A DNA stretch of 64,000 nt from Takakia lepidozioides (GCA_030704615.1 CM060734.1:29326001-29390000); one strand, 5' to 3'; numbered from the stretch's first letter, positions 8,717 through 62,460 are shown. Notes: generated by a model not told the origin, from the letters alone. A program made the numbers and translations.

Positions 8717-9270
8717 ATTTTTTATTTTTATTTTTTGAAAACAGGGGACAATGACCCTGATGGAAACTTTATTTGGAGTTATTTCGGGGGAAAAAAATTA
8801 AAACCCCTATTACACCATGAAGCACACACACCGTAATCAGTGAACAATGGAACCTAACCCCTTGAAAAGGGAGGAAGACCTTACCAAGACTGAGTCCCAA
8901 ATTTCTGTAGGACTTCTAAAAGAACATCTACGCTTTTAATCTTGTATGATGGGCTAGATTAAAATATGAAAGGCTTAGAGTCTTGCCATTAAACATTGAC
9001 TTTGGCCAAATCGAGTTATCTATAATGAAGCCACGAGGCTTTTGTAGAATCGCGGAGGTATTTCCAATTTGTGTCACGATCGAACTCGGGGGATGTGGTG
9101 GAGGGTGGCATGGAGAGCTTGCCAAGGGGATGGTGGCAACTCGGTCCAGGTGTAGAGGTTTGTGGACGCACTGTTGCAGATGAGGCCCTGGTTGCCCCAT
9201 GAGGCTTGGAAGGCAACGTAGATTGCGATAGCGTTTTGTGGGTTGCGCTTGATGTTTGCACAAAGTTTCC
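8717..9270 (-). mobile_element. LINE 3' end remnant, related to the LINE at 59.5-62.5 kb
   Basis: T-tract followed by gaaaacagggga...aaaaaaattaaaacccc.attacacc matches 59523-59640. Peptide SPEFDRDTNWKYLR matches SPEFDRDINWHHIK. Confidence 0.8.
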
Positions 9271-9408: not shown

Positions 9409-10387
9409 CACTACAACAGATCCCGGCTTTAACGTCTGCCACATTTGCCCAGTCGTAGCATATATGTCTACAAAATGCAAGGGGGCGTCCTGGTTGCCAT
9501 TTATGACCACCAGAAGTCGTATATGCCACCTTGTACGTCCGCCACGTCAGGATCTGCGGTCAAACACGTTTGACCAGATAGGGGAAGATGGTAGATACGA
9601 CTAGGAGTCATGGCCAAAACTGCAACATGATGACGTGAGCATGGGAATGTATGACTGTCAATATTCACGACTGCACGTGACGATTGTCGGTTGCCCAAGG
9701 AGTGTCTACGTGGACGATGCCAACATAAATGGATGAAACAGATGCAGGATGTGATTGCAAATGACGACATGTCAACATATCATTGCTCGCGGGCACTAAG
9801 CCACACCCTGTGAATGAAGGAATGAATGGATGAATGAATGATTAAAATGAATTAGGATGAGTGAACTAGGATGAATTAGGATAAATGTGCTTGAATTTAG
9901 GGTTGCTAGGTCGCAGTGTTAAGTATGAGGATAATAAGTAGTAAAAACATTTAACTACTGTTTCACTGATCCAGCAGATTAAGAGTAAACTAATCGACTG
10001 TTGGTTAAGGTTAGTGAAACAAAACGACTGTATTATCTCAACGAATGATACACAAACGCCTTGCTGGCAACTATTGGATGAACATATCAAACATAACTTT
10101 TGTGCACTGGATGAACGTATGAACGAATGATACAACAAACGCCTTATTGGCAACTATTGGATGAACATGAGAACAAATAATAATGCAAACGCTGAGCTGG
10201 CAGTAATGGATGAACTGACAGTGAAACTCATTTAAGGATTCATTTTGGATGAATGGATGAAATTAAAATGGCCAAAAAATGGAAAAAACAAAATCCATCC
10301 ATCTATCGCTACATTCATCCATCCAGTCATGAGTAGAGGGGATTTACCGTTTTTTTTTTCCTCCCATGCCATCTGTTTGTTTTCTTT

Positions 10388-10532
10388 GTGTCGAGTTTGA
10401 TCGTGAGAGACGACAAACAGGACGAAGTTGTGTTTGCTTTCTTATAGTGTCGAGTCTGATCATGAGAGACGTCGATCAGGGCGAAGCTATGTTTGTTTTG
10501 TTTTAGTGTCGAGTCTGATCATGAGAGACGAC
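10388..10532. repeat. About 59-bp tandem repeat, 3 copies, inside the Pack-CACTA
   Basis: Core gtgtcgagtctgatcatgagagacg at about 10388, 10447 and 10506. Confidence 0.75.
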
Positions 10533-10564
10533 GAGCGGAGCTGGTGGGATAGGGGGCGGACAAG

Positions 10565-10643
10565 GACTCAAACCCTAGAATCGGGGCATGAAGATGTGGT
10601 GCACGATGTGGCCATCGATTACTATGGGAAGCGGCTCGCCACC
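10565..10643 (+). pseudogene. SEC13: Captured N-terminal fragment of a SEC13-like WD40 gene
   Basis: TQTLESGHEDVVHDVAIDYYGKRLAT matches the conserved SEC13 N-terminus. Confidence 0.85.
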
Positions 10644-10744
10644 TTCACGATCACGATGGACAACCGCAATCGCAAGGTGTGGCTTTTTCTCAATGTACGA
10701 TGTGAAGAAGTTTGTTCATCTTGCAACAAAAAGGCTTAAGCCAA

Positions 10745-12020
10745 ATGCGCTTGCGACCTATGAGCAAATGATTGAGCAAGGGGTATTGCCCAACAAAGTC
10801 ATGTTCATTTGCGCTCTCAATGCATGTGCGAGCCTGGCAGCCCTGGAAAAGGGCAAAGAGGTCCATGCTACGATCGATGTTGGAACATAGTCATATTTGA
10901 ATCTGAAGAATACTCTCGTTGATATGTATGTCAAGTGTGGGGTTGCAGCTGGCAGGTGGGGTGATCCCACAGAGGCGAGAACAATGATGAAGGACAAAGG
11001 TGTTAGAAAGGAGGCAGGGCACAGCTGCATTGAGGTTGACAATCGGGTGCATAAGTTTACTGTATGAATCGAGTGAATCTGATGTAAAGAGAAGGTGTGA
11101 AGGCAGATAAGGTCATTTTCTTGTGCATCTTGAATGCATGTTCCAGCCCATTGTTGATAGAGCAAGGCAAGTAGCTCCATGAGGGCATCATTAGAGCTGG
11201 ATTTCAATCAAATGTCAGTATGGGGAATGCCCTCGTCAGCATGTATTGCAAATGCGGGGGTGTGGAAGATACACGGGAAGTGTTTGCAAAATTGCCCAAG
11301 CGCGATGTGATCTCATGGAATTGGATGATAGCTGGATTAGCTCAGACAGATCACGCACAAGAGGCACTTGAACTATTGACAGTGAACCAAAAGGATTCTA
11401 CTGAGAAAATTCGCCCTTTACATACCAGAGTGGCTGAGCCTGAACAGGAACTACAAACCCTACATGTGATGATAGTTGGACTCGGCAAGACTGCCCAGTC
11501 TACTGAGGAGAGGGCAGCTCCTCATGTGGGTAGTGCAACTATAGTTAATGCCAGAATTTTGGTGCTTCAAGGACTGCCCCAATCACACCTGAAAGCTGCT
11601 GGAGAACAACTTGATCTTTTGGTGGCTGACTTAACTGAGTTCAAACAGGAATAATGCAATTCACAGCAGCAGGTAGCAGAGCTGGTCATGGGCAAAGAGG
11701 TGCATGGGGATATCATCAAAGCTGGAATTGTACCAAACGTCATTCTAAACACTACCCTGGCAGCTCTGGAAAAGGGGAAAGAGGTCCATGGCGACATCTT
11801 CACAGCTGGAATTGTACCAGATTTCATTTTGAACAACACCTTGGTGGACATGTTTGCAAAATGTGGGTGCATCTAAGATGCAAAGGGAGTGTTCAACACT
11901 ATGGCTGAACAAGATGTGGCGTCGTGCAAGCCTGGCAGCCCTAGAGAAGGGCAAAGAGGTGCATGGGGATATCGTCAAAGCTGGAAAGTACCAAATGTCA
12001 TTCTAAACACTGCCATGGCA
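10745..12020 (+). pseudogene. Captured, shuffled PLS-class PPR gene fragments, including an E-domain piece, with stops and frameshifts
   Basis: ALATYEQMIEQGVLPNKVMFICALNACASLAALEKGKEVH; GNALVSMYCKCGGVEDTREVFAKLPKRDVISWN; MKDKGVRKEAGHSCIEVDNRVHKF; repeated ALEKGKEVHGDI. Confidence 0.85.
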
Positions 12021-12639
12021 GCTCATTCACTACCCACTTTGGATTGGTAGCTAGCATGCACAGGCAGCCTGTTGCTAACCAGTGCTTGTTTGGGATATTA
12101 TCTATTGTCCAGTCTTAGCTTCTTTGCTGTTGGTTTGCCCTTTGAAACCGGAGTCAAATTAGCAGTTTTAAAATCTGAAATAGCATATCTACCAGGGAAT
12201 AACTTCGTCCCAAATGGCCATTTTCTCTTTACTCAGTTCAACAATTTAACCATCTGGAGATGATATGAAGTGGCAGTACCTGGACAACCCAGAGGGCAAG
12301 CCATCCCTTCCAATAATTGCAGACGTATGTGCAGCACCAAAGTTTATATTGATTAGGGAAACGCCTTTGACTTCCCACAGGTCAAGTTGCATGGATAGTT
12401 TGTCAATGAGGTGAGAGTCATAGTCTGTTCAAGTGTCAGTTCACATTCCATCGATAGGAAGATCATGTCTGCCATGAATAGTCTTTCATTGGAATCCACA
12501 AAGGGCAATTCAGATATGATCTGCAGTATGCCACTGTGCTATGTCAACTGGAAGCCACAGCAACACCGGCACAATTGATATGCACTGCTAATCAAGGCAC
12601 CTTCTTCAACATGTTTCACCTTGTTTTACGGCCCTAGAT

Positions 12640-12965
12640 TTTTATGTTGACTTCTGCAAGTTAGCTGGTTGAGTGAACCTTTGATAGTTTGGAGTGACTT
12701 TGACATGATACTGCCAATGTGACAACAGGAAAGTATCCAAAAACAGGTAACAGAGATGAGGAGAAGTTGTGGAATGAATACTTTTCTGACCCCAGTCAAC
12801 GGTGGGACAACCAAGGCAAAAAGGTGTATGCCCGTCAATTACCAGATGTCATTCTGAATACTGCCCTAGTGGACATGTATGCCAAATGCGGGTGCATCGA
12901 GGATGTAAAGGAGTGTTCAACACTATGGCTGAATGAGATGTGGTGTCGTGGAATGCGATGTTTGC
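12640..12965 (+). pseudogene. Captured intron end plus exon of an OSB-like organellar ssDNA-binding gene (PDF-motif region), joined to a further PPR fragment
   Basis: EEKLWNEYFSDPSQRWDNQGKK resembles the OSB LWxxFFxxPxxWWDNR motif. It is followed by DVILNTALVDMYAKCGCIED. Confidence 0.65.
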
Positions 12966-14670
12966 AGCCACCGCGCTACCTGTCACAAGACAACTCCCAA
13001 ACCTCCAGTCCTTGACTGCCAGAATGGGGTAAGGGTTCCCTACCTGCAATTTTCCATTTTGCACACATCAAGTTTGCTTAGACATTCTTAGCGATGTTAG
13101 CGATGTTAGTTTGTTTCACATATGTCAATGTTGTTGTTGTTATATTGCCTGAAAGCTTGCTCATGTATCTTCTGCCGTTTTCGGGCTGGATGGCAGTTGA
13201 AGATGGGTGACCAAGTCCGGCCAAGCCAGTGTATGCATCTTCTGCTCAGGCATTTGGAAGTCTACTAAGACTTTGCAGCTTTGTGCATTTATGTAGCAGA
13301 GGATTAGATTATGGAACGGATCTCTGAACATTATGTCATGTTGTATTTGAATCGATGTTCCAATTTCAAATGTGTTTTCATGTTTCAATGGTGTTTTCGT
13401 ATGCTTTCAATGCTACGGTCATGTACACGACTACCTCCCATCCACAGAGCCTCCGCCACGTGCCACTTTCATCCCTCGTGTTCGCCTATACTCGTGTCAT
13501 GTGCAGTATCCAAAGTGTGCCATGGAAGTCATATGTTCCAGTCATAACGACCACCCCACCCCCATCCTGCATAATTTGACTCCACGTGTGGACCTGGGAT
13601 TAAACGTCCGAAGTCATATATGCCAGTCACGAAAGACCCTCCCGCTCCATATTGTCATGCCACGTGTCTTGTCCAGTCTAATCCACGTGTTGTCCTTGGG
13701 TTAATCTGCGGAAGTCACCCTATCATGCCACGTGTCGTTCCTGGTATTCTCCACGTTCTGTCCTACGGTTAATCCACGGAAGTCGTATATGCCAGTCGTG
13801 AAGACCCTGTCGCCTTCCCTTTGACGTGACACGTGGCATATCCCTTCCGTTCCACGTGAAGCTGACATGGATTCGCAGTCATTTACTACGGTCCTATCAA
13901 TGACTATGATTAGGCGTCCCCGTTGCCACGTCAACAGTGAGCTCCACGACTGGCAGATACGACTCTATGGCGCTTATGACTCATTTGTCACAACTGATTG
14001 GGTTTATCTGACTAGGCAGTCATGCAGTCGTAAAAGGCTGATACGACTGGAAAATAGCAGACATAAAAGCCGGGATCTGTTGTAGTGTTCCTCTCTTTGG
14101 AAGCCCACCTCGGTTGGAACAAGCTCATTCACACACTAAATCACTGTTTCTGGGTTCAATTTTGGCCTACCCTTAAACTCCACTGGCTCGTACAGGTGCC
14201 CCCCCGATAGGTTGAAGAGTGTCTTCTTTGCTGAGCCGGTTCTCACAACTTTCACAATAGGAGGAGGCAGAGGGGATTTTGGCTGGGCACCGGGAGGTGG
14301 GCTCGTAGCAAAGTCCCTGTCTTCGCCCTTGTCTTCAGCCTCTTCCACCTTTTGTTGTTTCTGTTTCTTCGTCTTCTTTGGAGTCACAACTGGAGCGTTT
14401 TACTGGCGGGTCCTCTTCTTGGTTCCCTTTTGTTTTTCCTGCAAGGCCTGATCCAACGTCTTCTGTGCGATAACAGTTGCTTTCCTTGAGTTTTTCAAAG
14501 TAGCAGCCTCCCCTGGCTGCATTGGCCCAGGAGGGACATGATTTTGCCGGGCTCGGAGTCCTCCAAGCCAGGAAAAACGGGGGCTCCCTTGCGAGAGACC
14601 CGCTCTTGACGAGCACAAAAAACTCAGAAAAAGCAAAATAACGACTGAAAATGGTTCAGGACGGCTCCAT

Positions 14671-16382: not shown

Positions 16383-16474
16383 ATATAGGGCCCACCCCTG
16401 AAAAGGGGCAGTAGCCGCAAGGCAAAGTGGCGCTTAGTTACGCCGGCTTCGGCCGGAGTCTTCTTCTTCTTCTT
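16383..16474. repeat. Structured ~85-bp dispersed element, copy 1 (non-autonomous TE end or SINE-like), with a (CTT)n tract
   Basis: Near-identical to 59160-59241 and contains three tetraloop hairpins. Confidence 0.85.
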
Positions 16475-42800: not shown

Positions 42801-43271
42801 CAGCACGTGGACGTGCCACGTGGTGTCCCCAGATTCCCCCCCATACAGAGATACGTGTGACTGCAAAGCCCCATCCCCCACAACGACACGTGGCAATGAC
42901 CTGTCGCACCACATGTTACAATCACGACGCGACAAGTGTTGTCGTTTGATTCCCTCCTCCGCAGTCATAGTTCACAGTCAGGGATGGCGTCGTAGTCTAA
43001 CACGTGGCATGTTCTGTAGCCAGCACGTGTCTCTCTTACACCGCGGCTGACATGGACTACACTGTCCGTTCAGTCATTCAGTAAAGCCAGCGTGTATGAC
43101 TACCCCCACAGCTGCTTAGGCGCCACGTCACAGCCAGCCTGGAGAGTCATAACTGCCATGTCACAACTTACTCGGCTTCTACTTCTTCAGAGTCAGGAAG
43201 TCGTAAATGGCTTCCATAACTGCATTTGCAGTCATAACACAGAGACGTAAAAGCCGCAATCTGTTGTAGTG
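39900..43271 (+). mobile_element. Right arm of a CACTA element: degenerate ORF2/TnpA-like gene with an embedded FCP1 domain, subterminal repeats and right TIR; left end not found
   Basis: TIR AAAGCCGCAATCTGTTGTAGTG (20/22 to the Pack-CACTA TIR) ends at 43271. Tnp1/En-Spm-like C-terminal block SGRIAG...PEGHVAIHIDDV...LGDTVGYITVWSDKLV at 41822-42085. Confidence 0.8.
40705..41325 (+). pseudogene. FCP1/NIF HAD phosphatase-like domain, frameshifted near 40875
   Basis: KHLLILDINGLL...VRPGCKAFLDKCF, then VAAWS...FFKNLSAVW...SNTLLVDDMPHKGLNNP...LWPF. Confidence 0.85.
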
Positions 43272-49950: not shown

Positions 49951-52679
49951 TCGCCTTGTCCGTCCGCCCTGGTCATATATGCTTGGCCTAGCGACAAGTG
50001 CTCTATCCTCCGTTGGTAACACTGGTGCAGCCCGTGACTGCTCTAGCGTTTCAACATGCAAATCATGCTGCAATGGTTTGTCATGGATACCACTGTATCC
50101 TTTCAACTTATTGGCATTGACTCTTCCCAGCATTTCTTTGTTAATGGTTTGTAACATGGCGGTGTTGTTATCATACATCTTTTGTATGACATAAGGTCCT
50201 TTCCATGGTGATTTAAGCTTAGAAGCTTTAATCTTTCCTTTCTTCTGCAACCATAGAACCAAATCCCCTATCTTAAAAGTCTTTAACTTGCCTTCATCAA
50301 ACTGTTCCTTTCTCTTCATTTGAATTCTGGTCATATTATCAGCTGCATCAGCACGTACTTCTTCCACATGGTATAATTCATGTTTCCTGACCTTAATGGA
50401 ATCTTGCAATTCCATTCTCTTTCCCCACTCCGTTCTCATGGTAGGTAACAGGAATTCCACTGGAAGTAAGGCTTCCATACCATAAACTAATTGGAATGGT
50501 GTATATTTAGTGGTGACTTTATATGAAGTCATGTATGACCACAAAGCTGTCAGCAGCTTTGTATCCCAATCCGTTCTGTTTGCATTGACTATCTTAGCCA
50601 AGATAGTACATAGTATTTTGTTGGTAGCCTCTGCCTGCCCATTACCCTGTGGGTAATATGTTGTACTCTTTCTATGCACAATCATGAGCTCTTTAGTCAA
50701 CAACTCAATGGTCTCATTCATGAAGTGACTTCCCTGATCACTGATAAATTCTAAGGGACAGCGACATTTCCGGTTTCATGGGTCTGGAGTAATGCAGTCC
50801 TAGTCTTCCTGGGATCCACAAGAAGTCCATTCTTACACACAATGTGTCCCAGAAGCACCCCTGAGTTCACACAGAAAGTACACTTCTCTGGATTCAGGCC
50901 CAGACCTCTCATCCTGCATCTGGCCAAACATAACTCCAATTTATGCAAGTGCTCATTCTTAGAGCTGTACACACTGAAATCATCCAAGAATACCTGCATG
51001 AAATCATCCAGATACTCATGAAAAGATTCACTTATCATTCTCTGAAAGGTCGCTGGTGCATTACAAAGCCCAAAGGGCATGACTTTGTATGCATAAGCCC
51101 CCTCAGTCTGTGATGAAAGCTGTTTTTCCTTGGTCTTCTTCTGCCACTTGCACTTGATTATAACCACTGAAACCATCCATGAATGAGTACATCTCATGAC
51201 TTGCCACAGTGTCTAATACTGCTTCTGTGAATGGCAAAGGGAAATGATCTTTCTTCGTACAAGCATTCAGCTTCTTGTAGTTCACACAAACTCTTAGTTT
51301 ACCATTCTTCTTGGGAACTATAACAATGGGTGACAACCAAGTTGTATACTCTATTGGGTATATAAACTTAGCCTCAGCCAACTTCTTAATCTCTTCTCCA
51401 ACCTTCTGTGCGTAGTTGGGATTCATTCTGTACCTCGCCTGCTTGATTGGTACTGACCCTGGTTCCAGTTCAATCTTATGCTGGCAGACTTCAAGTGGTA
51501 TCCCTTTTAAATCCTCATAACTCCAAGCAAATACATCTCTGTATTTGATGAACAAGCTTTTAGCTTCTTCAAAGAACTTCGGCTCCAAATCAGCTCCTAC
51601 TTTCACCATCCTTGGTTCCTCTTTAGTTCCCACATTTATTTCCCTCACTTGCTCATCAGTTGTGATTGTCCAACCAGTCACCACTTCATCCTGTAAGCTC
51701 TCAGTGGCTGGTTCCTCTAGGATTTCCATTTCTCCTTCTCTTTCCTCATAGAAATGTGATGGGTAACTGCTGGTTTCCTCTTCAGTTGGTGTTGCTGTCA
51801 CTACACCACAGCAGATACCTCTTAAACAACTTAGGCTTTCCAGCCGCATCTCTGCAACCTGCTCCCACTCTGGGTGTGCAGCAAATAGGGTAGCTTCCTG
51901 CTCCTCATCCAGTCCTCCTTTCCAGTCATACTCTCTGACTCCTCGAGGTCTTCTTGTAGCAGGTAATCTACTAGATTTCTTTGTGGTAATTTGTATCTCG
52001 TGCATCCCATTATGCACGGTTAGTAACTGAGAATTCCAGTCATGGAATACCCTGGCCTGTTTCAGCCACGGACGTCCCAATAATAAGGAGTATACCTCCA
52101 TGACTTCATCCATCTTCAACACAGTTACTATGATCATAAAGATCATCTTCTGTATCTGTATCTTAACTCCTCTTATCAATCCCAATGGCTGTACACTTCT
52201 TTGATCTGCCATTGTTACTGTAAATGGGGCTGGTTTCATGTTACTTAGACCAAACTTCTTCCTTAATTGGTCTGTCATGATATTTACTCCAGAACCTCCA
52301 TCTATCAGTACATCAGTTAGTTCTGTGCTTCCAATTCTCAATTGGATTCCTGGCATAAAATCATCAAAGTCCATGACTGTTTCTCGCCCTTCCGGCTTCA
52401 CATTATAACTGGTCACCTTGCTGTTCAGGTCTGTGTTTCCTGTCTCCTGCGCAATTCGATTGATTGCTTGATACAGCCTGTGCCTACAATAAGGTGCCAC
52501 AGCTAATAGCTGTCCAATGGTAATTTCTGCTTTGGTCTGGCATATTACTTCAGCCAAAGTCTCTTCATTACTTTGCATGTCTGCATCTTCTTTCTTCCTT
52601 TCTTCCTCACTCCCTTCTTCTTCTCCATCAGAATCAGAGGAATCTGCCACAGGAATATCAGTACTCTTCTGCATTTCCA

Positions 52680-55600
52680 TGTCTGAAGGCCATGAAAAAA
52701 ACTCATCGGAGGGACGATGAGTAGACTCGAGCCTATCTGTATTGACGTGCATGAAACCACACTCGTCTTCCACTATTGTTGCGGATGGCCCCACAAGATG
52801 TGGCTGGAACCACCTTGCCTTGAAGATAAGAGGCTGGTGCCTTGTATATTGAAGTTGGAGTATGCTCTCAAGCTCTCCAAAGTAGTTGAGTGTGCTCATG
52901 GTAGGTCGTGTATCTCCCCTGCCCCACACGGAGTCTTGCCAATATGAGGCACACAAGCCAAAATCAAATGTTGTTTTGCGCTTCATGTCAAGAGCACGAA
53001 TGCGGAAATGACAACCATGAACCCAAACCGCCGTGTATGAGGTTGCAAATTGAGAGGGGCCCCTTGCAATGTCTTGCACCAAATCTGAAACCACCTCACC
53101 TTTCGCAATGCTATCCTCTACTTTAGTCCGAAGCCAATGGCGGAATGAACTTAGAGGTTGCAATTCCATGGGCAATTCTTGTGAAGGCACATTCCTACGT
53201 CGGCCCCTTGCTCGCGGAGCGCGTGTAATCGCCCTTGCATGATTCCGCCTCTACGCAACCGTTTCCTCCTGTGGTTGCTGAACAAGGTTATTGTATCTTG
53301 CCTCCCACTCATGTATGGATGGGGTGTTTTCAGTATGAACTCATGCGCTTGGTTAATCACCATGATGAGTAATTTTACCCTCTTTGAATTTTTGGGCAAA
53401 ACGATGTCTTTGGTTCGTACATCCTCATCTTCCTTCCACATCGGAGGGGCTTCCTTATCCACCCTTGCCAAGTACTCCATGCAGTAGAACATAGCCTCTT
53501 GCAATGTATACCCCTCCGCCATGCTACCCTCCGGGTGTGTCGTTTGTCTTACATGTGCTTTCAAAGTCTTCATGTATCGCTCAAGGTAGTACATCCACCG
53601 AGAATGAACGGGGCCGGCAATGGAAGCCTCTTCCACTAAGTGCACTACCATGTGCACTTGGACGGCAAAGAAGGAGGAAAGAAGGTGCATCTCCAACATA
53701 CACATGACCACCGCCGCCTCCTTCTTCATGCGTGGAAGGTTCGTTTCCTCCAGCTCTTTGGAGCAAATCCACCGGAACAATGCTCCCAATCTATAGACTG
53801 TCTCGCGAACCTCGGGAGTCAATGTCCCACGTACTGCAATGGGCAAGATGTCTTGCAATAGATTGTGGTAGTCATGAGACTTCAAACCATGGACCCCGTC
53901 TTCGTTGAACTTCATACAGAGGGATGACCCATAACCAGTTGGTGTTCGGACAGCTCCTACGGTGGCTATCACTTTCTTGTATTCCTCCTTTGTCCATTGC
54001 CAAGGTGCGCGCCTATACTTCCACCGTACAACACCCTTTGGGTCCACACCATTTTCTTCGGCCCATAGATGGGGCATGCGACCCTGCTCCTCAAGTTTCT
54101 TTCTAACACCGAGAGAATCTCCTTTCGCAGCCACTCCCTTCTTTGCCGGCGTGCCATGAAGAACACGAAAAAAGGACGAGCAAACATTCTTCTCAATATG
54201 CATGGGATCTAGAAGATGACGAATCTTCAGGGTCCTATACATATCCCTACCCACAAATTCTTACACGTCTATTTTGTCGTGAAAGTGACAATGGAAATCA
54301 TACAAAACATGCAATATCACATGCATGCATAACATTATTGATGGTGTTTTTGTGGAATATGTACCGCCCAATATGACAACTCGTAGAAGATTGAAAGCCG
54401 CTTCATGCCGGGCACCTCCACTTCACCGGACCCCTCCGGATGGGCCTCCTTCCATCGGTCTTCCCAAAAGTGCCCGGATGGTATCACAGGTGGGGGACGT
54501 AACTCCACTTTGCCATCAAATAAGTGTTTGTCTCTTCTTCTCCAATGATGGCTCATAGGAAGAAACTTGCGGTAGTTGGGATACACCATCTTGCGAAGAT
54601 TGCTGGAGCTTTGTGCAAGTTCATCGCCACAATGCAGGCATGCGTGGTACCCTTTAGTGCTCAACCCCGAGCAAACAGTAAGTCTTGTAGACATTCCGCC
54701 ACATTAGGAAAGATAAAAAGTTTCCATGTGCATCTATCCCACTACGGTGCAGAAGACTGTCTCCGCTACTTCAATCAATCCCAATCCTCATCAATATCCC
54801 TTGACAGGTAAATGTACGCGGGTTTCTCATGGGGAACATAATATACCTGGATAATCATGCATTGTCCAAAGCAAGATGCCTCTCATCTGAAAAGATTGTC
54901 TGGCCATAGGGTCAAGTGAAGCATCCAATGCCGGGACCCCCCTCCATAACTCCTTCAGTTCATCAACTAGAGGTCGCAAGTACGTGTCCATGTCTTTCAC
55001 TTGTTTTTTCCCTATGAGACATTCACACCATTAATTGTTTCAATGCTCCACCATGCTAATTATACTTCATAATGAATGACACATCTTACTACATGATTAC
55101 GTCACTCATCAATCTTCCATCGAAATTGCGCCAAAGAGACAAAAATTAATGTAAAATCCAAAGAAATAATAAGCATGAAATGGGAACACTCACCCGGTAC
55201 AATGGCAGCCAACATGATATGGCATTTTTTTATTGAAAGATACGGAGGGATGTTGTAATTCACCATGGTCACCGGCCAAGTGGAATGACTACATGACTTG
55301 GTCAGAGTATGGGTTGACCCCATCCGAGGAGAAGCCGAGGCGGACATGTCGTGGGTCATAAGAGAAAAGGCCACATCTCTTCAGTATGCCTCCATGCTTG
55401 TGAATCTTGTGGCCCGCACATCTTTCCCGGGGGGTTCTGATACGAGGCGTGCCATCTCATCAGTTGTGCCAATGAGGGGCTTCGATAGTGTGCCTACAGT
55501 CGCGGGATGATTGGAAAGTAGTGCATTTTCTGGCACCATCCCCATGTCGGCCCCATATCATAATCAGTGTCATTCATATCTCTAAGTAAAACCTTACGTC

Positions 55601-56250
55601 TTGTAGCGGTTGCAAAAAGGTAGAATGCAATATACAAGTGTATTGTGGCGCGGGTATACCTTGCGCGGGGCTTTCTTCCCTTGAACATCATCCCGATATC
55701 GGTCTTTGTTGCACTTTGGACACTTGATGAGTTTCGCATCCTCTCCGTAGTACAGGGTTTTATCACATGGACATGCATGAAAAATCTTACAGTCCATCCC
55801 CACAGCATCTAAGGCTGCTCTTGCCTCTTTTCTTGATCGTGGCATTCTCGGCTTCAAATGTGGGGCAATGATGTAGTCCGCAATAGTCCGCATTCTGGCG
55901 GATATACCCACATTGCTTATGCCAAACCAGATTTGCAAATTCAGCAACAACAAGATGGTTGAAAGTCTACTCACTTTGGCCCCTTCGTATAAGGGAGTTT
56001 TGGCTTCTTTTTCCATGTCATTCAAAGAGTATGTGTCCTCATCTACCATCTGATGCATTAAGAGGTCCTCCATTGCTGCCACATCCTCATGCATAATTCC
56101 ATTGTCATTGTTGTCCACATCATCGGAGACCGCCATTTCAGACGAGGTCGGGTCCATTTGATACACACCTCCCTCCGAAGGAACAAAATCCCGGTTCATG
56201 ACAAGATCATGAACTTCGTGAATTAACATCATGGGGTTGTGGCCGACATT
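52680..56250 (-). pseudogene. CACTA/En-Spm Tnp2 (TnpD) transposase with introns; Transposase_21, DUF4218 and DUF4216 regions; stops and frameshifts
   Basis: FHACPCDKTLY...CPKC; STWPVTMVNYNIPP; YLRPLVDELKELW; WTMHDYPG; LDPMHIEKN; GLKSHDYH; GPVHSRWMYYLERYM; YFGELESIL...KARWF. Confidence 0.95.
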
Positions 56251-56565
56251 CTAAGATGCCAAAAACAACCATGTCATTATCAGTTTCCATACATGGCGTT
56301 GTTCATTATCATACAGGATAAAACCCAAAGTACACATTATACACACGAGGGGAATACATACATTGCTTCACCAAATGAAGGAGACACTATATAATTCAAA
56401 ATACCCAAATTCACATATAGCATCCACCCAAACTCCCTTGAATATAGCATGAAAAATTGCATCCAAATACACATCAAATGCCTATGTATATATATACACG
56501 GTGGAGGAAGCCACCTCAATGTACAAAATGTCTTCCTACGTCCATCTACACATGATGAAAGTCGG

Positions 56566-58342
56566 CTAACGCCTAAAGTCATACTCTGCAAACAACTCCT
56601 CTCCAGCCCTAATGGTCCTCATTGCACATGTCATCACAAAAGTGGTGATGTTAGGGTCCAATCTACTATCCCCGTCATGACGCTCATCCCAAAACACGTC
56701 GGTGGTGTGGCCCGGCGGTAAGGTAACTGAACTGGGGTTTCCGTCACAATAAATATGGGCTTTGCGGCCCAAATTTCTCGCCTTTACATCATTGTTGTTC
56801 ACAACAAGGATGTAAGGATGGATCAAGGACCCAAGGCCGTGTGTCTGCAATAATTGCCACTCCCGGTGGGTGTACCTCGGCCCAAAATAGGGGAACAAAT
56901 CCACAGAATCCTCTCCTCCCCCCAAAACTACATCCTCCATCAAAAAAAGTCCGCGACCCATACTAGGGTCCATTGCCTCCATCATGCAATACATGCGACC
57001 CCAAAAAAGAAAGGGCTCACCCTCGGGAATCGGAACTGGACAAGGCACAAGACATCGGTAGAAATGGGGTTGGACTCCCATCGTGAATAGCTCCCTAGCA
57101 CCACGATGACGTATGGTGCCGTCATCAGGCCGGCGAAGGCGCGGACCAACCGTGCAAAACAACTTCGGTCTACCTCTCCTAGGGGGCGGCGCCCGTCCAT
57201 CACTTCGGGGGCCCTTCTCCCGGAGTGGGAACCTAGTGATCCATCGGTCCCAGTCATACACAGTCCCCAAAGGTGGTGGGATCCATCCGGGTTCTGCCGG
57301 AGAACCCGGATACGGACTCGGTGGCGGCTGTGGTCTCGGCAATGGAGGGGAAGGGACACGTAGGTTGGTATGAGGGATCTCGCGTGGAGGTAGTACTGGC
57401 CGAGATGGCCGGGATGGCGATGGTGATGAGGAAATAACATGTACAATAGGAGGAACAGACGATGCGGATGATGGTGATGATGGGGGTGCCGATGTCGAGG
57501 ATGTCGAACTCGGACTCGGTGGCGGTTGTGGTCTCGGCAATGGAGGGGAAGGGACACGTAGCCGGTCGGTGTGAGGGACCTCGGATGGCAATGGTGATGA
57601 GGAAAGACCATCTACAATAGGAGGAACGGACGATGCGGATGATGGTGATGATGGGGGTGCCGATGTCGAGGATGATGAATGTGTGTGCGTAGGTGGCAAG
57701 CGCCTAGCCCGGTGCCCAAAAATGGAAAAACACGCATCGTACCCCGCTACCTCACAAACTGCATCTACGTCATGTTGCGAGAAAAAAATGTTCACATCCG
57801 GAACGGGGTGGGGCTCGTAAGAAGGAAGAAACCCGCATCGGTATGCCTCTTCAGCAAAAAAATTGTGAGCTTGGACATCAAGACGGGGCTGCAAGATGCA
57901 TGATATGAAATGCATCAATACTCAATTCACAAACGCGAGGTTTTATTAGATATAGTACTTTTAATTGAGGAGTACGTGAGAAGATATATGGACGACTTAC
58001 CTTTGCTGCATCAGCAATCTCGTACTTGGCGTAATGTTTTTGCACAACATGGGGTCGCCGCATCATCGGTGTGGTCCTCCCAACCGGTAGTCGTGCCCAA
58101 CACCAACTGCACCAACACTCAATCTTAGGGAGGCGGTCCTGGTGGGGTATCCCCGGGGCTCGTGCCTCTGGACTCGGCGGCCTACGACCTCGGGGTGGTG
58201 GCCGTGGGGGCAAAGCTGTGCGGACATGGTGATGCCGCCTAACTCGTAGACGAGGCGAACGTGCTGTCTCGCCCTCAGCAGGTGGTTGTGGCACAGCCGG
58301 CAACGAATCCTCAAGCGTGACACGTCGATAAACACGCGGCAT
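56566..58342 (-). CDS. Two-exon gene (58342-58001 and 57888-56566): CxCxxC...H motif, Pro/Ser-rich linker and SET-like domain
   Basis: Phase-0 GTAAGT donor and TTGCAG acceptor. SET motifs GRGLF, YFG, and RTIRAGEELFAEY. The canonical NH motif is not seen. Confidence 0.75.
57313..57675. repeat. Internal duplication (about 180-200 bp) in the Pro-rich linker
   Basis: LRVPSPPLPRPQPPPSP and STSAPPSSPSSASSVPPIV are each encoded twice. Confidence 0.85.
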
Positions 58343-59161
58343 GACCTAGCACGAGAGAGAGGTAGAGTACTGTATTGTGACCCACTGTAACCTCCGGAGG
58401 AGTTACACTCCCAACCCTTGGAAAAACTTGAAAAAAAAAAACCCTACAAACGTAAAGCCATATGTCCCCACCCCACAAAAAAACAAAACCCTAAAAACAA
58501 AACTATATTGCAGCTAATCCTAAACTAATTATATTATAACTAACCCTAAACTAAACTATGTAACCCTTAAAACCCTAAGAGCCAAAGACCCAAAAACCCA
58601 AATGATCATTGCAAAACCCCATAACCCAAAAAACCAAAAAATAAAATAAAAAATGAGAGGCCTCTTCAACTCACCTCTGCGACTGCCGTGCGACGTCCCC
58701 CTGAGACAACGATGCCCGTGCGATTCCCCAACGTCGCAGCGGATCCTCCTCCTGCCAAAGTGGCCGCCCTTCACTCCCCTTCTCTCTCCCCTTCGCGAAG
58801 GCGTCTGATCGCCGCCGAGGTTTTTCGGTGGGGTCGCCACACTGGTCCAGTCCGTTCTGGAGAGTCTGCTGGACCCGGGTCCACCCACTTTGCTCTGCAA
58901 TCCAAGGTTGGGCATCCATGCATCGGTGCATATGAGGTTACATGACACAAGCGAGTCCACCATGAGTCCACCACGCCGAACCCCGCCATAGAAGAATAAG
59001 GACTTAGAATTTTTTTTCAGAAAGAACGAGTATACAAAATGTTTAATTAACAACACACATTAGATCTGACAGGAATTGAGCATCAAACCTCATAAACCTT
59101 ATCCATTGTTCTTAACCATCGCACTACCCAATGCTTTTTGAAAACATTGAAAATATTTAAT

Positions 59162-59248
59162 ATAGGGCCCACCCCCGAAAGGGGGTAGTAGCCGTAAGGT
59201 GAAGTGGCTCTTAGTTACGCCGGCCTTGGCCGGAGTCTTCTCCATCTC
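59162..59248. repeat. Structured ~85-bp element, copy 2, flanked by a 14-bp direct repeat
   Basis: TGAAAATATTTAAT at 59148-59161 and 59249-59262. Confidence 0.85.
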
Positions 59249-59522: not shown

Positions 59523-62460
59523 TTTTTTTTTTTTTTTTTTTTGGAAACAGGGGAAGGCCCTGAATTAATTTTATTGAGTTTATTGTGGGGAAAAAAAATT
59601 AAAACCCCAGATTACACCTTGAGGTACACACACCTTAGTCAGTGATGAACGAACTAACTTTCTGAAGGGAGAAGATGAAGACAACCTAGGGTTACAAGCC
59701 CTATGTAGAAGTCACACCCGTAGGGGGTTGCTTTGAATGTAGGCAGTCGCTTCTAGACTGGTGAGATCTACAAGGAATCCATGAGGTGAATGGCTTAGCA
59801 GCCGCTTGGAACTTGTCCGAAGCTTATTTGTGTGCACGAATGGATCTCAGCGAAATTTCAGTCTAGCAGCCGATTTGATGTGGTGCCAATTGATATCCCT
59901 GTCAAACTCGGGGGACGCCGCCATGGAGGGGTGTTTTGAGTTCTCGCCATCGATCTGGCGGTTGAGCTGCCCAGGCACAGTGGGATGGTGACGAGCTAGC
60001 GCAGAAAAGACCGTTTCTTGCCCAAGTGCTGGCGAACTGACCGTGGATTGCTGCCGCTTGTTGGGGTCTTCTTGTGACATCTGCATAGAGTTTTGCCCAA
60101 GCCTTCCTCCCTTCAATCTGCAAGTCCCAGAATACTCTAGAAAGCAAGGTAGATAAAGTGCAGGTGGTACCCGAGAGGGTCCAGGCACATCTAACTTTCC
60201 ATATGTTCCACAGTGTAGAGTTGCGAAGGCGATCGTAGACTGGGCAGTTTGAAGCCTTGGTTTTTGAATTTGAGTCGTAGTTGAGTAACAGATGTACAAC
60301 TGAGAAGTCTTAGATATCCCAATGTCTATAAAATTCTTTAACGATAGGCCAGACTTTCCTAGGGGTAAGGCAACAAACAAGGCAATGTTCCAGGGTTTCC
60401 AACTGCCCATAGGAGCAACAAGAGCAAAGCAAGGCTTCCTGGAATTGTAACCATTCTCCCACCTTAAGGACTTTGTTGGCTATTTGCCATAGAAAGGCGG
60501 ACATCTTGGCTGGCCTTGTTTTTTCCCAGATACATGTCCAGATTGATTTCTAGTTTTCCTCCACAAACCCGTAAGATTGCCATTTCGAGTTCCATTTGGC
60601 AAAGAGGGGGCTGGAGATGCCAGAGCCTTGTATGCTATTCTGGTGGTGTACGCGAAGAAGGGAGTCGGAGATCTAGAGAAAGCCCAGGACCACTCTCCTG
60701 GATCGAAGGGAAGCTCTGCGAGGGGCCTTCCTAAAATCCAAAAGAATGAATTTGCTGCTAGCCAGGTTGCGATGGGGATCATAGGGTCTGGAGTTGGGTT
60801 CATGTCTCTTGTGGGAGAGGACCAGCAGCAGATTCTGATGGGAGTATGGGGGAGATTAGGAAGGGAGAGAGGGACTGTACTTTGTAGGGATAGAGACATG
60901 GTCACAGGATGGATACTGAATGGAAAAGCCCGTAGACTGTTGTTTAGCTTGTCCAGACGAAGAGGATGGTAAGTGACTCTCTGACAATAGCTAGGGACCA
61001 GTAGTTCATGGTGGGGGCAGAAGGACCTGCTTGCAATGTTGGTAGCCAAGTAATTGAATCTTTGATGGTCTGAAAGCCAGAGGAAGTCCTGGCTGATCTT
61101 GCAATGCTAGCAATAGATGTGGAGTCCATAAAGTCTTGGTTGTTCCATATGTGTCTAACCTGGTTAATGCCAGATCTGTCCCAGTAAGACCATATTTTGG
61201 CTTGGACCCTTTGTGGTTGGGTTGGCTTGTTGGTATTTAAGAATAGGTGCTGTCGGAGGGTCTCTTCATAAGTCTGAGGTTCCATTTTCCGTAGAAAGGG
61301 TCCGAGCCTTCCCCATGCGTGCCAGATGGTGGTCCACAGGGATGAACCTAAGGCTTTATGTTTGAACCCTTAAGCTACCCAACGCAGAGATGGGGTCCAG
61401 AGGGCTGTTTTGAGGGGAGAGGCATCCTGGATGTTCTGAACCACTAGATATTTCCACCAGCCCCCTTTTGGGCCAAAGAAGCGAGGAATCCACTTACCGA
61501 GGAGAGCTGTTATCTGGGTTTCTGGATCAATAATTCCAAGCCCCCCCTGTTTTTTGGGCAGACAGATCTGCTTCCATGAAACTTGTGGTCTCTTCTTAGT
61601 CTGGGAATCAGATCCCCATATAAAATTGCGGAGAAGACCAGAATTTTTTTTAATCTGATTGGTGTTCGGTCTCCACGATGCAGTGAAGTACCAAATGCTT
61701 GCCGAGAGGACCTGATTGGCCGCCAAGGCTCTCCCGGTGATGGAGAGGTGTTTAGAGCCCCAGAAGGTAAGTTTGCATCTGAATTTGGCCAGGGTGGGTG
61801 CAAACTTTTGGTCATCCGAGAGGCCAACACCGAAGGTATAATCGAGGAATGTTGTTGTTTGTCCAGGTCGTAGCCACGATAAACCCGAGCTAGAGCCCCA
61901 TGAAGGATCAGTTCCTAAATGGGATTGATGGAGGTCTCCAGTTAGGATAGCACATGTTTTTGCCCAGTTGACTTTGAAACCTGAAGGCAGAAAAGGTTCA
62001 ACATAGATGTAGCCTCTTGGAGGTTTTGAGGGGTGGCTTGGAGGATGAGGAAGGTGTCATCGACAAACATTGAGTCTTTGAGTTCTGCTGGCTGAGAGGT
62101 GTGGTAATTAGTTATGCGGAGATCTCTAATGAGGCGGTTGGATTCAAGCATGTAGCCTAGAGAGTCAGCCACAAAAAGGAAGAGGAAGGGAGCTAGTGTG
62201 CAGCCTTGCCTGACAGACCTGTGAGCGGGAATGATGTCGAAAGTTGCCTATTGACAATGACTCTGCTCGAGGAGTTTTGAAGGAGGATAATAACCCATTT
62301 CTTGAAAGATTCTGGGATACCTACCTGGCAAGAGCTCCCATGAGGAATGACCATTCAACCCTATCGAAGGCTTTCTCGAAGTGAAGGAGTTGGAGAGCGA
62401 TTGCTTGTTTGGTTTTGAGGGCAAAGTCAGGTATTTCTTGGGCAAGAAGAGGTTGTCCAT
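59523..62460 (-). mobile_element. 5'-truncated, degenerate L1-like LINE (RT, zf-RVT, poly(A))
   Basis: FEKAFDRVEW, VRQGCTLAPFLF, FVDD, VSWKQICLPKKQGGLG, ETLEHC. T-tract at 59523-59542. Confidence 0.92.

Follow-up and report, generated by a model that had tools for sequence, protein, structure and literature searches.

A decayed CACTA copy in Takakia lepidozioides with a SET-domain exon upstream of its transposase exons and a first exon probably shared by two proteins

Organization of the SET/Tnp2 locus

The DNA analyzed here, referred to as the window, is a 64,000-nt stretch of the Takakia lepidozioides genome (GCA_030704615.1 CM060734.1:29326001-29390000), with positions counted from its first letter. 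On its minus strand, between 58342 and 52680, it carries a coding exon for a zinc-finger-like module, a long open exon with a divergent SET domain, and the remains of a Tnp2-type transposase, in that order. These are probably the parts of a decayed CACTA/EnSpm (Tnp2-type) transposon copy whose 5' unit yields either a SET protein or the transposase by alternative splicing. The observations behind this reading are the splice geometry, the homology and predicted fold of the SET domain, the synteny of SET and Tnp2 sequences, the splice phases, and both splice junctions in contigs of paralogues. These contigs belong to X1, the single run that holds part of the stretch; they are assembled contigs, labelled RNA by guess, and their identity to the window (89–97%) indicates that they derive from paralogues and not from this copy. 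The features of the locus are as follows.

58675..58720, minus strand: putative leader exon, non-coding, of which the 3' end is placed by its donor GCAGAG/GTGAGT (GT at 58674-58673)
58346..58674, minus strand: putative leader intron of 329 nt, with a polypyrimidine tract and a CTAG acceptor (AG at 58347-58346)
58001..58345, minus strand: shared coding exon 1, with the zinc-finger-like module CWCSWC...H; X1 contigs cover 58000-58347
57889..58000, minus strand: intron 1 of the SET isoform, 112 nt, GT..AG, read from the sequence; no X1 contig lies on 57891-57999
56566..57888, minus strand: last exon of the SET isoform, with 440 codons and a stop, comprising an N-terminal stretch, a Pro/Ser-rich linker and the SET domain
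57313..57674, minus strand: tandem duplication in the Pro/Ser-rich linker, found by self-blastn
56569..57108, minus strand: divergent SET domain of 180 amino acids, defined by homologues, alignment and predicted fold
56734..56735, minus strand: site of an in-frame deletion of ~33 nt relative to an X1 paralogue contig, which has 32 extra letters
56251..56565, minus strand: AT-rich stretch after the SET stop, ending in CTTAG; tail of the long intron of the Tnp2 isoform (56251-58000) and presumed 3' untranslated and poly(A) region of the SET isoform
52666..56250, minus strand: Tnp2 exons and introns, frameshifted near 55367 and 55300-55306 and ending at ~52670

Exon 1 begins with an ATG at 58342 and extends for 342 nt (114 codons) to 58001, where it is directly followed by the phase-0 donor GTAAGT (GT at 58000-57999). 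A phase-0 acceptor (AG at 57890-57889) opens the SET exon at 57888, which comprises 441 open codons including the stop at 56566 (440 plus stop) in the same frame as a 450-aa open reading frame (ORF). A second phase-0 acceptor (AG at 56252-56251) opens at 56250 an exon that starts with NVGHNPMMLIH and continues into the Tnp2 ORF. Unspliced read-through of exon 1 reaches a stop at 57878; the genomic frame of exon 1 differs from that of the SET exon, and the two are in frame only once the 112-nt intron is removed. A first-pass annotation of the sequence had placed the donor at 58001 and the acceptors at 57888 and 56250, all in phase 0, and these coordinates and phases proved exact on reading of the minus strand, as did its description of the SET exon as open over 440 codons.

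Both of the junctions proposed on that basis, from exon 1 to the SET exon and to the Tnp2 exon, were recovered in X1 contigs of paralogues. Record 2 (320 nt, gap-free) joins 58215-58000 directly to 56249-56146, and thus exon 1 to the Tnp2 exon, whereas record 6 covers 57637-57890 and then continues with 11 letters that, together with AG, are the last 13 nt of exon 1. One upstream exon joined to two alternative exons, an arrangement like that of maize En/Spm, is thus found in the paralogue contigs. The match of record 7 to the window ends at 58347, at an AG behind a polypyrimidine tract, with unlike sequence beyond; its loose end of 154 letters, on the upstream side of 58347, shows a weak alignment to 58713-58675 that stops at the leader donor. 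The sequence suggests the presence of a spliced leader exon upstream of exon 1. X1 contigs also cover parts of the SET exon at 89–97% identity, and none lies on 56258-56445. Some contigs show 1-nt deletions (57803, 55780), indicating that defective copies are among those represented.

The Tnp2 part consists, in order, of an N-terminal acidic region, a Cys-rich region, Transposase_21, DUF4218 and a DUF4216-like region. Pfam recognized Transposase_21 (PF02992) in three pieces within 54335-55374 (E values of 2e-12, 1e-13 and 5e-9) and DUF4218 (PF13960) at 53151-54254 (E = 7e-32), and the DUF4216-like C-terminal piece aligned to protein P0051 and to a Riccia sorocarpa locus (L005). The domain order is that of a Tnp2-type transposase, although it is broken by frameshifts. 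Tnp2 homologues were up to 51% identical. Among the named ones, those of a fern (Adiantum, 44%) and a liverwort (Riccia, 40%) are closest, and the Tnp2 proteins of angiosperms are more distant. The transposase had been described in the first pass as broken, and this was seen to be so: the frame changes near 55367 and 55300-55306, and the homology to Tnp2 stops near 52675. Several homologues align across neighbouring residues in differing frames at 55367 and at 55300-55306, which identifies these sites as frameshifts, not introns.

Where the homology stops, the ORF at 53190-51103 runs on into gypsy protease and reverse transcriptase (RT), and this passage into gypsy sequence at ~52670 indicates that the 3' end of the element has been lost. 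The ORF (51103-53190, minus strand) is a single stop-free frame of 695 amino acids that leads from the Tnp2 C-terminus to the end of a gypsy gag, an aspartic protease and RT. Given that the joint, near 52665-52675, lies within the coding region of the retroelement and not at a long terminal repeat, it looks like a deletion or recombination joint and not like a clean insertion.

The divergent SET domain

Pfam yielded no match at E<=0.1 for the SET ORF or exon 1 of this copy, phmmer found no match for the SET part among PDB sequences, and a single-sequence AlphaFold model of the SET part was unusable (pLDDT 40). A word-indexed homologue search of the 440-aa exon was blank for region 250-440; this is a property of the index, since an exhaustive HMMER search with the SET part yielded 39 homologues, with E values from 1e-12 for the best to 1e-4. 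With Pfam blind to this copy, the SET identity had to be established through homologues and a fold search, and it held. Pfam SET (PF00856) was matched by 20 of 24 aligned family members (best E = 6.5e-9), so that this copy would belong to PF00856 by transitive homology. A profile of the family compared with PDB matched Legionella LegAS4/RomA best (5czy, 8sr6; E = 1e-4) and many histone methyltransferases as well. Protein language-model features gave a score of 0.96 for SET clusters. The AF2 model of the 180 amino acids of the window, built with a 37-sequence alignment, had a pLDDT of 77.2 and a pTM of 0.68, and Foldseek returned 105 PDB matches for it at E<=1e-3, including SET7/9 (E = 5e-5, TM 0.45-0.50). 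Given that the top 50 of these are all SET methyltransferases, that most family members are recognized by Pfam, and that the profile finds LegAS4/RomA, homology and the predicted fold indicate that the SET domain called in the first-pass annotation is real but divergent.

The consensus motifs of the family are GLGLFA, LFPYxGPxY, IDGDPxRxGNIAGYINS(S) and RTIRAGDELFxxY. This copy retains GRGLF, FPYFGPxY and AGEELFAEY, and the family alignment contains no counterpart in it of the cofactor motif GN.AG.IN (consensus GNIAGYINSS); the S-adenosylmethionine-binding motif is therefore missing, as had been noticed from the start. X1 record 3 has 32 extra letters at 56734, which read DVYGNVAGLI(N) in frame. 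These letters are the motif missing here and fit the family consensus, so that the window holds an in-frame deletion allele, 11 codons short, in agreement with an early guess. In the family and in the X1 paralogue the motif takes the form GN(I/V)AG(Y/L)INS, with Ser where the canonical NHS has His. To judge from the alignment, the cofactor-motif set (GxG, (R/G)FINHS, ELxF/Y..Y) is present in the family in a variant form; this copy has GRG and EELFAEY but lacks the block equivalent to NHS, and thus the full set.

This variant motif bears on whether the SET isoform, if made, is an enzyme at all. It could be a non-catalytic pseudo-enzyme throughout the family, serving as an adaptor that binds histone tails or the transposase, or as a regulator or inhibitor of transposition; the Ser in place of the canonical His, the absence of pre-SET and post-SET Cys clusters, and the fact that catalysis is only predicted would fit such a role. 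The GxG motif, the Asn of IN(S) and the Tyr of ELF.Y are conserved, however, and LegAS4 and RomA, which the profile ranks as the nearest relatives of solved structure, have YINFS where NHS aligns. Both LegAS4 and RomA are active histone methyltransferases. We regard a family-wide pseudo-enzyme as unlikely. The Legionella proteins resemble the family in their minimal SET domain with IN(F/S)S instead of NHS, whereas they are secreted bacterial effectors with ankyrin repeats and are ~16% identical, so that the likeness is one at the domain level only.

The linker upstream of the SET domain contains a recent tandem duplication (57313-57674), the units of which are 94–98% identical (57412-57503 versus 57583-57674, 94.6%; 57313-57363 versus 57511-57561, 98%). 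A deletion of 9 nt at 57397 in one X1 paralogue indicates that linker length differs among copies.

Related elements and the reading of the locus

SET and Tnp2 sequences are same-strand neighbours, with SET immediately upstream, at two loci of Riccia sorocarpa (L001, L005), in Sphagnum troendelagicum (L011), in two ENA contigs (L004, L009) and in Logan contigs of different runs (L006, L007); a further Logan contig (L008) is too short to reach Tnp2. The SET–Tnp2 linkage suspected from the window alone thus recurs in other genomes. Three of these elements have a split layout comparable to that of the window:

L006: module CWCVRCKG..HISSYGRHDG; exon 1 donor at 1393, SET acceptor at 1523, Tnp2 acceptor at 2723
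L009: module CDCVYC..EH; exon 1 donor at 245, SET acceptor at 729, Tnp2 acceptor at 2708
L011: module CQCTKC..HIQRFGHH; donor at 10232, SET acceptor at ~10349, Tnp2 acceptor TAG/AAT downstream of the SET stop

The donor and both acceptors are in phase 0 in all three, the SET domains of which are just 23–27% identical to that of the window. An Asn codon straight after a TAG acceptor opens the Tnp2 exon of L006, of L011 and of the window. The module and the SET domain occur together in one product in the annotated Sphagnum protein P0103, the annotated Riccia protein P0023 and the single ORF P0020. The conservation of this layout between Sphagnum and Riccia shows that it is ancient, and selection presumably preserves it in elements that are active; the deep conservation of SET motifs and splice phases likewise argues for function in such elements.

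Annotation has treated these isoforms as host genes. The module-plus-SET isoform at L011:10001-11149 (Sphagnum troendelagicum OZ019924.1) and the Riccia proteins P0014 and P0023 are listed as ordinary unnamed or SET-domain host proteins, with Tnp2 beside them having no gene model or fragmentary ones. Caution is therefore advisable, as counts of bryophyte SET genes may include transposon copies.

An alignment of the module from the window, L006, L009, P0020 and P0023 showed two Cys residues and one His residue to be invariant. The exon 1 of the window did not match Pfam PF13963 (Transpos_assoc; CPCxxC...H...HGE), and weak matches in the same register (profile 28-61) were obtained with exon 1 of L006 (E = 0.057) and the NH2-terminus of P0020 (E = 0.13). 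Comparison of the five-sequence alignment with the domains of P0091 and P0088 by hhalign gave a P value of 0.003 and a probability of 10% in the CxCxxC register. These sequence comparisons lend weak support to homology of the module with Transpos_assoc. Canonical Tnp2 proteins such as P0091 carry an N-terminal module, whereas the Tnp2 ORFs of the elements studied here have no N-terminal zinc module of their own.

According to the reading that we favor, a single 5' transcription unit, consisting of the leader exon followed by coding exon 1 (114 amino acids, CxCxxC...H module), would give rise to two proteins. Use of the near acceptor (57888) would yield isoform a, a protein of ~554 amino acids composed of the module, the Pro/Ser-rich linker and a minimal SET lysine-methyltransferase domain, with the stop at 56566; use of the far acceptor (56250), with skipping of the SET exon, would yield isoform b, in which the same module heads the Tnp2 transposase. 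Both proteins would then begin with the same targeting module. The SET isoform of intact copies might methylate chromatin, or a protein bound to the element, at the sites of transposase action and perhaps counter silencing, akin to TnpA of En/Spm or VANC of VANDAL elements; such a role in self-targeted chromatin modification or anti-silencing is an inference by analogy. The present copy is dead, with a SET domain that lacks the cofactor motif and a transposase that is frameshifted and truncated. The overall interpretation of the first-pass annotation is supported, with nothing in the SET fold, the linkage or the junctions contradicting it.

A stronger proposal, which we put forward only tentatively, is that a land-plant CACTA lineage, present in mosses, liverworts and the genome studied here, encodes its own active SET lysine methyltransferase, which would receive the N-terminal zinc module of the transposase through alternative splicing, be delivered by it to element chromatin or to the transposition complex, and thereby keep the element active or mark targets. 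If so, the SET isoform would be a transposon-built, self-targeted chromatin writer.

Several observations weigh against the favored reading. A search of both ends revealed no terminal inverted repeats (TIRs) for this copy, and the sequence upstream of the leader yielded no convincing CACTA terminus; the combination of TIRs and a 3-bp target duplication was thus not seen. The RNA label of X1 is a guess and the run consists of contigs only, which limits what it says of transcript status, strand and abundance, and its contigs stem from paralogues, so that the evidence for expression does not come from this locus. The joint of record 2 is one base off the canonical GT..AG and requires one mismatch beside 22 others, a shift accounted for if the first base of the Tnp2 exon is a mismatch, and the exon 1–SET junction rests on the 13-nt overhang of record 6. 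The Riccia loci (L001, L005) and L003 carry the module and SET in one intron-less ORF and would need an internal donor for sharing of the module with the transposase; L005 has a possible phase-0 donor, GAG/GTACAG, after the module, and its nearest Tnp2 acceptor is out of phase with it. The His of NHS is Ser in this SET family, with methyltransferase activity and its target being predictions only.

Riccia also contains a SET copy without Tnp2, at L010:8999-10267 (Riccia sorocarpa CM100801.1), which is 84% identical to the L005 protein and is interrupted by two stops. It lacks the N-terminal module, Tnp2 sequence is absent within 8 kb of it, and a gene downstream encodes a Cyt-b5/fatty-acid hydroxylase. 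Annotated as a gene (P0025), this copy is a solo or fragmentary derivative. Comparison of L005 with L010 gave a dN/dS of 0.88 (1.08 in the SET part), and that of the SET exon of the window with X1 gave 14 synonymous and 20 non-synonymous differences (40 of 64 differences listed), including 2 and 9, respectively, in the SET domain part, numbers that are too small. Such ratios also count against the favored reading. They show within-genome copies to decay neutrally after insertion, as is expected of transposon copies, and are uninformative with regard to active lineages.

Another explanation holds that SET and Tnp2 are neighbouring genes with separate transcripts, exon 1 belonging to SET alone and the contig that joins exon 1 to Tnp2 being an assembly chimera or a DNA deletion derivative. 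The uncertified RNA status of X1, the single contig for this joint with its offset of one base, and the presence of module and SET in one exon in Riccia are in line with this possibility. The joint nevertheless falls within 1 nt of a GT..AG pair that had been predicted beforehand, and is gap-free on both sides. Furthermore, the Tnp2 acceptor is in phase 0 after an in-frame TAG in the window, L006 and L011, and also in phase 0 in L009; this recurrence indicates that a coding exon ending in phase 0 must precede the Tnp2 exon, and the Tnp2 ORFs lack the N-terminal module of canonical Tnp2 proteins. Separate genes thus appear quite improbable. That the SET ORF is instead a functionless host gene fragment recently captured by Pack-CACTA-style transduplication, with an accidental splice fit, is very improbable: such capture is present in the same window (TIRs at 9409 and 14087), and the SET domain of this copy lacks the cofactor motif and escapes Pfam, but the same SET lineage occupies the same place upstream of Tnp2 in elements that are just 25–35% identical (Sphagnum, Riccia, other contigs), with the GLGLF, GNIAGYINS and GDELF.Y motifs and the splice phases conserved, as expected of an old element-borne gene and not of a recent capture.

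Known systems and neighbouring sequences

Maize En/Spm, of the same CACTA superfamily, provides the closest parallel to alternative splicing of exon 1 into SET or Tnp2 sequence: a shared 5' exon and one primary transcript yield two proteins by alternative splicing, with transposase and accessory coding sequences being mutually exclusive splice choices. TnpA of En/Spm also affects the epigenetic state of the element. The shared exon is non-coding in En/Spm, however, whereas here it encodes 114 amino acids with a zinc-finger-like module; and the coding sequence of TnpA, a DNA-binding protein, lies downstream of the transposase ORFs, whereas the accessory protein of this family is a SET enzyme encoded upstream, inside the first long intron of the transposase. 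SETMAR likewise links SET and transposase sequences via splicing, but it is a primate host gene in which a captured transposase serves as an extra C-terminal exon of a single fused protein; in the present family, SET and transposase would be alternative products of an element and never one protein.

To our knowledge, transposons that carry chromatin enzymes are rare. SET genes are described as cargo of HarbingerS and of Phytophthora MuDR families (Kojima and Jurka 2014, cited in PMC12730594) and of Plavaka PAG2 of the red alga Bostrychia, Plavaka being related to EnSpm/CACTA and PAG2 having a DNA methylase domain as well (bioRxiv 10.1101/2025.02.11.637652). All of these are DNA transposons with SET-domain cargo, presumably for chromatin modification; they differ from the present family in superfamily or lineage and in host (oomycetes, red algae and others), and SET is a separate accessory gene in them, with no sharing of a coding exon between SET and transposase reported in the text consulted. 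The VANC anti-silencing proteins of VANDAL elements, which belong to the Mutator superfamily, are also element-encoded accessory proteins (Hosaka et al. 2017, cited in PMC12730594) proposed or shown to act on the chromatin of their own element; they are not SET proteins and are encoded by a separate gene, so that the likeness would be functional only. Our literature search found no description of SET in a land-plant Tnp2-type CACTA element, nor of a coding exon that such a gene shares with the transposase, and the SET/Tnp2 layout in mosses and liverworts has apparently not yet been described.

Transposons with chromatin enzymes illustrate the ways in which mobile DNA counteracts host silencing or turns it to its own use. 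In the family described here, the SET enzyme would be wired into the transposase gene and thus be more than cargo, both proteins beginning with the same putative targeting module, which suggests a simple route for sending a histone or protein methyltransferase to the places where the transposase binds. The family offers a testable model of element-directed chromatin modification in early-diverging land plants and possibly a natural scaffold for targeted methyltransferases.

A 977-aa Peptidase_C48 (ULP1-like) gene is located at L001:16473-19574 (minus strand; Riccia sorocarpa CM100799.1), ~3 kb past the Tnp2 remnants of the SET–Tnp2 element and in the opposite orientation. Proteases of the ULP1 type are often carried by transposons.

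The Pack-CACTA element of the window extends over 9409-14087 and has perfect 22-nt termini (CACTACAACAGATCCCGGCTTT). A third terminus of this type, with 2 mismatches in 16, is present at 43271 on the minus strand, indicating another element end of that family in the window; the Pack-CACTA TIR was found only at 9409, 14087 and 43271, with none near the SET/Tnp2 locus. Self-comparison of the window showed no second copy of the SET/Tnp2 element. Two short dispersed repeats were detected just upstream of the putative leader exon. One (59160-59241 versus 16383-16464) is 82 nt long with 89% identity. The other (59524-59645 versus 8718-8843; ~125 nt, 80% identity) adjoins a 20-nt A run (~59530-59550, minus strand), and this points to an insert of SINE-like or other retroposed origin.

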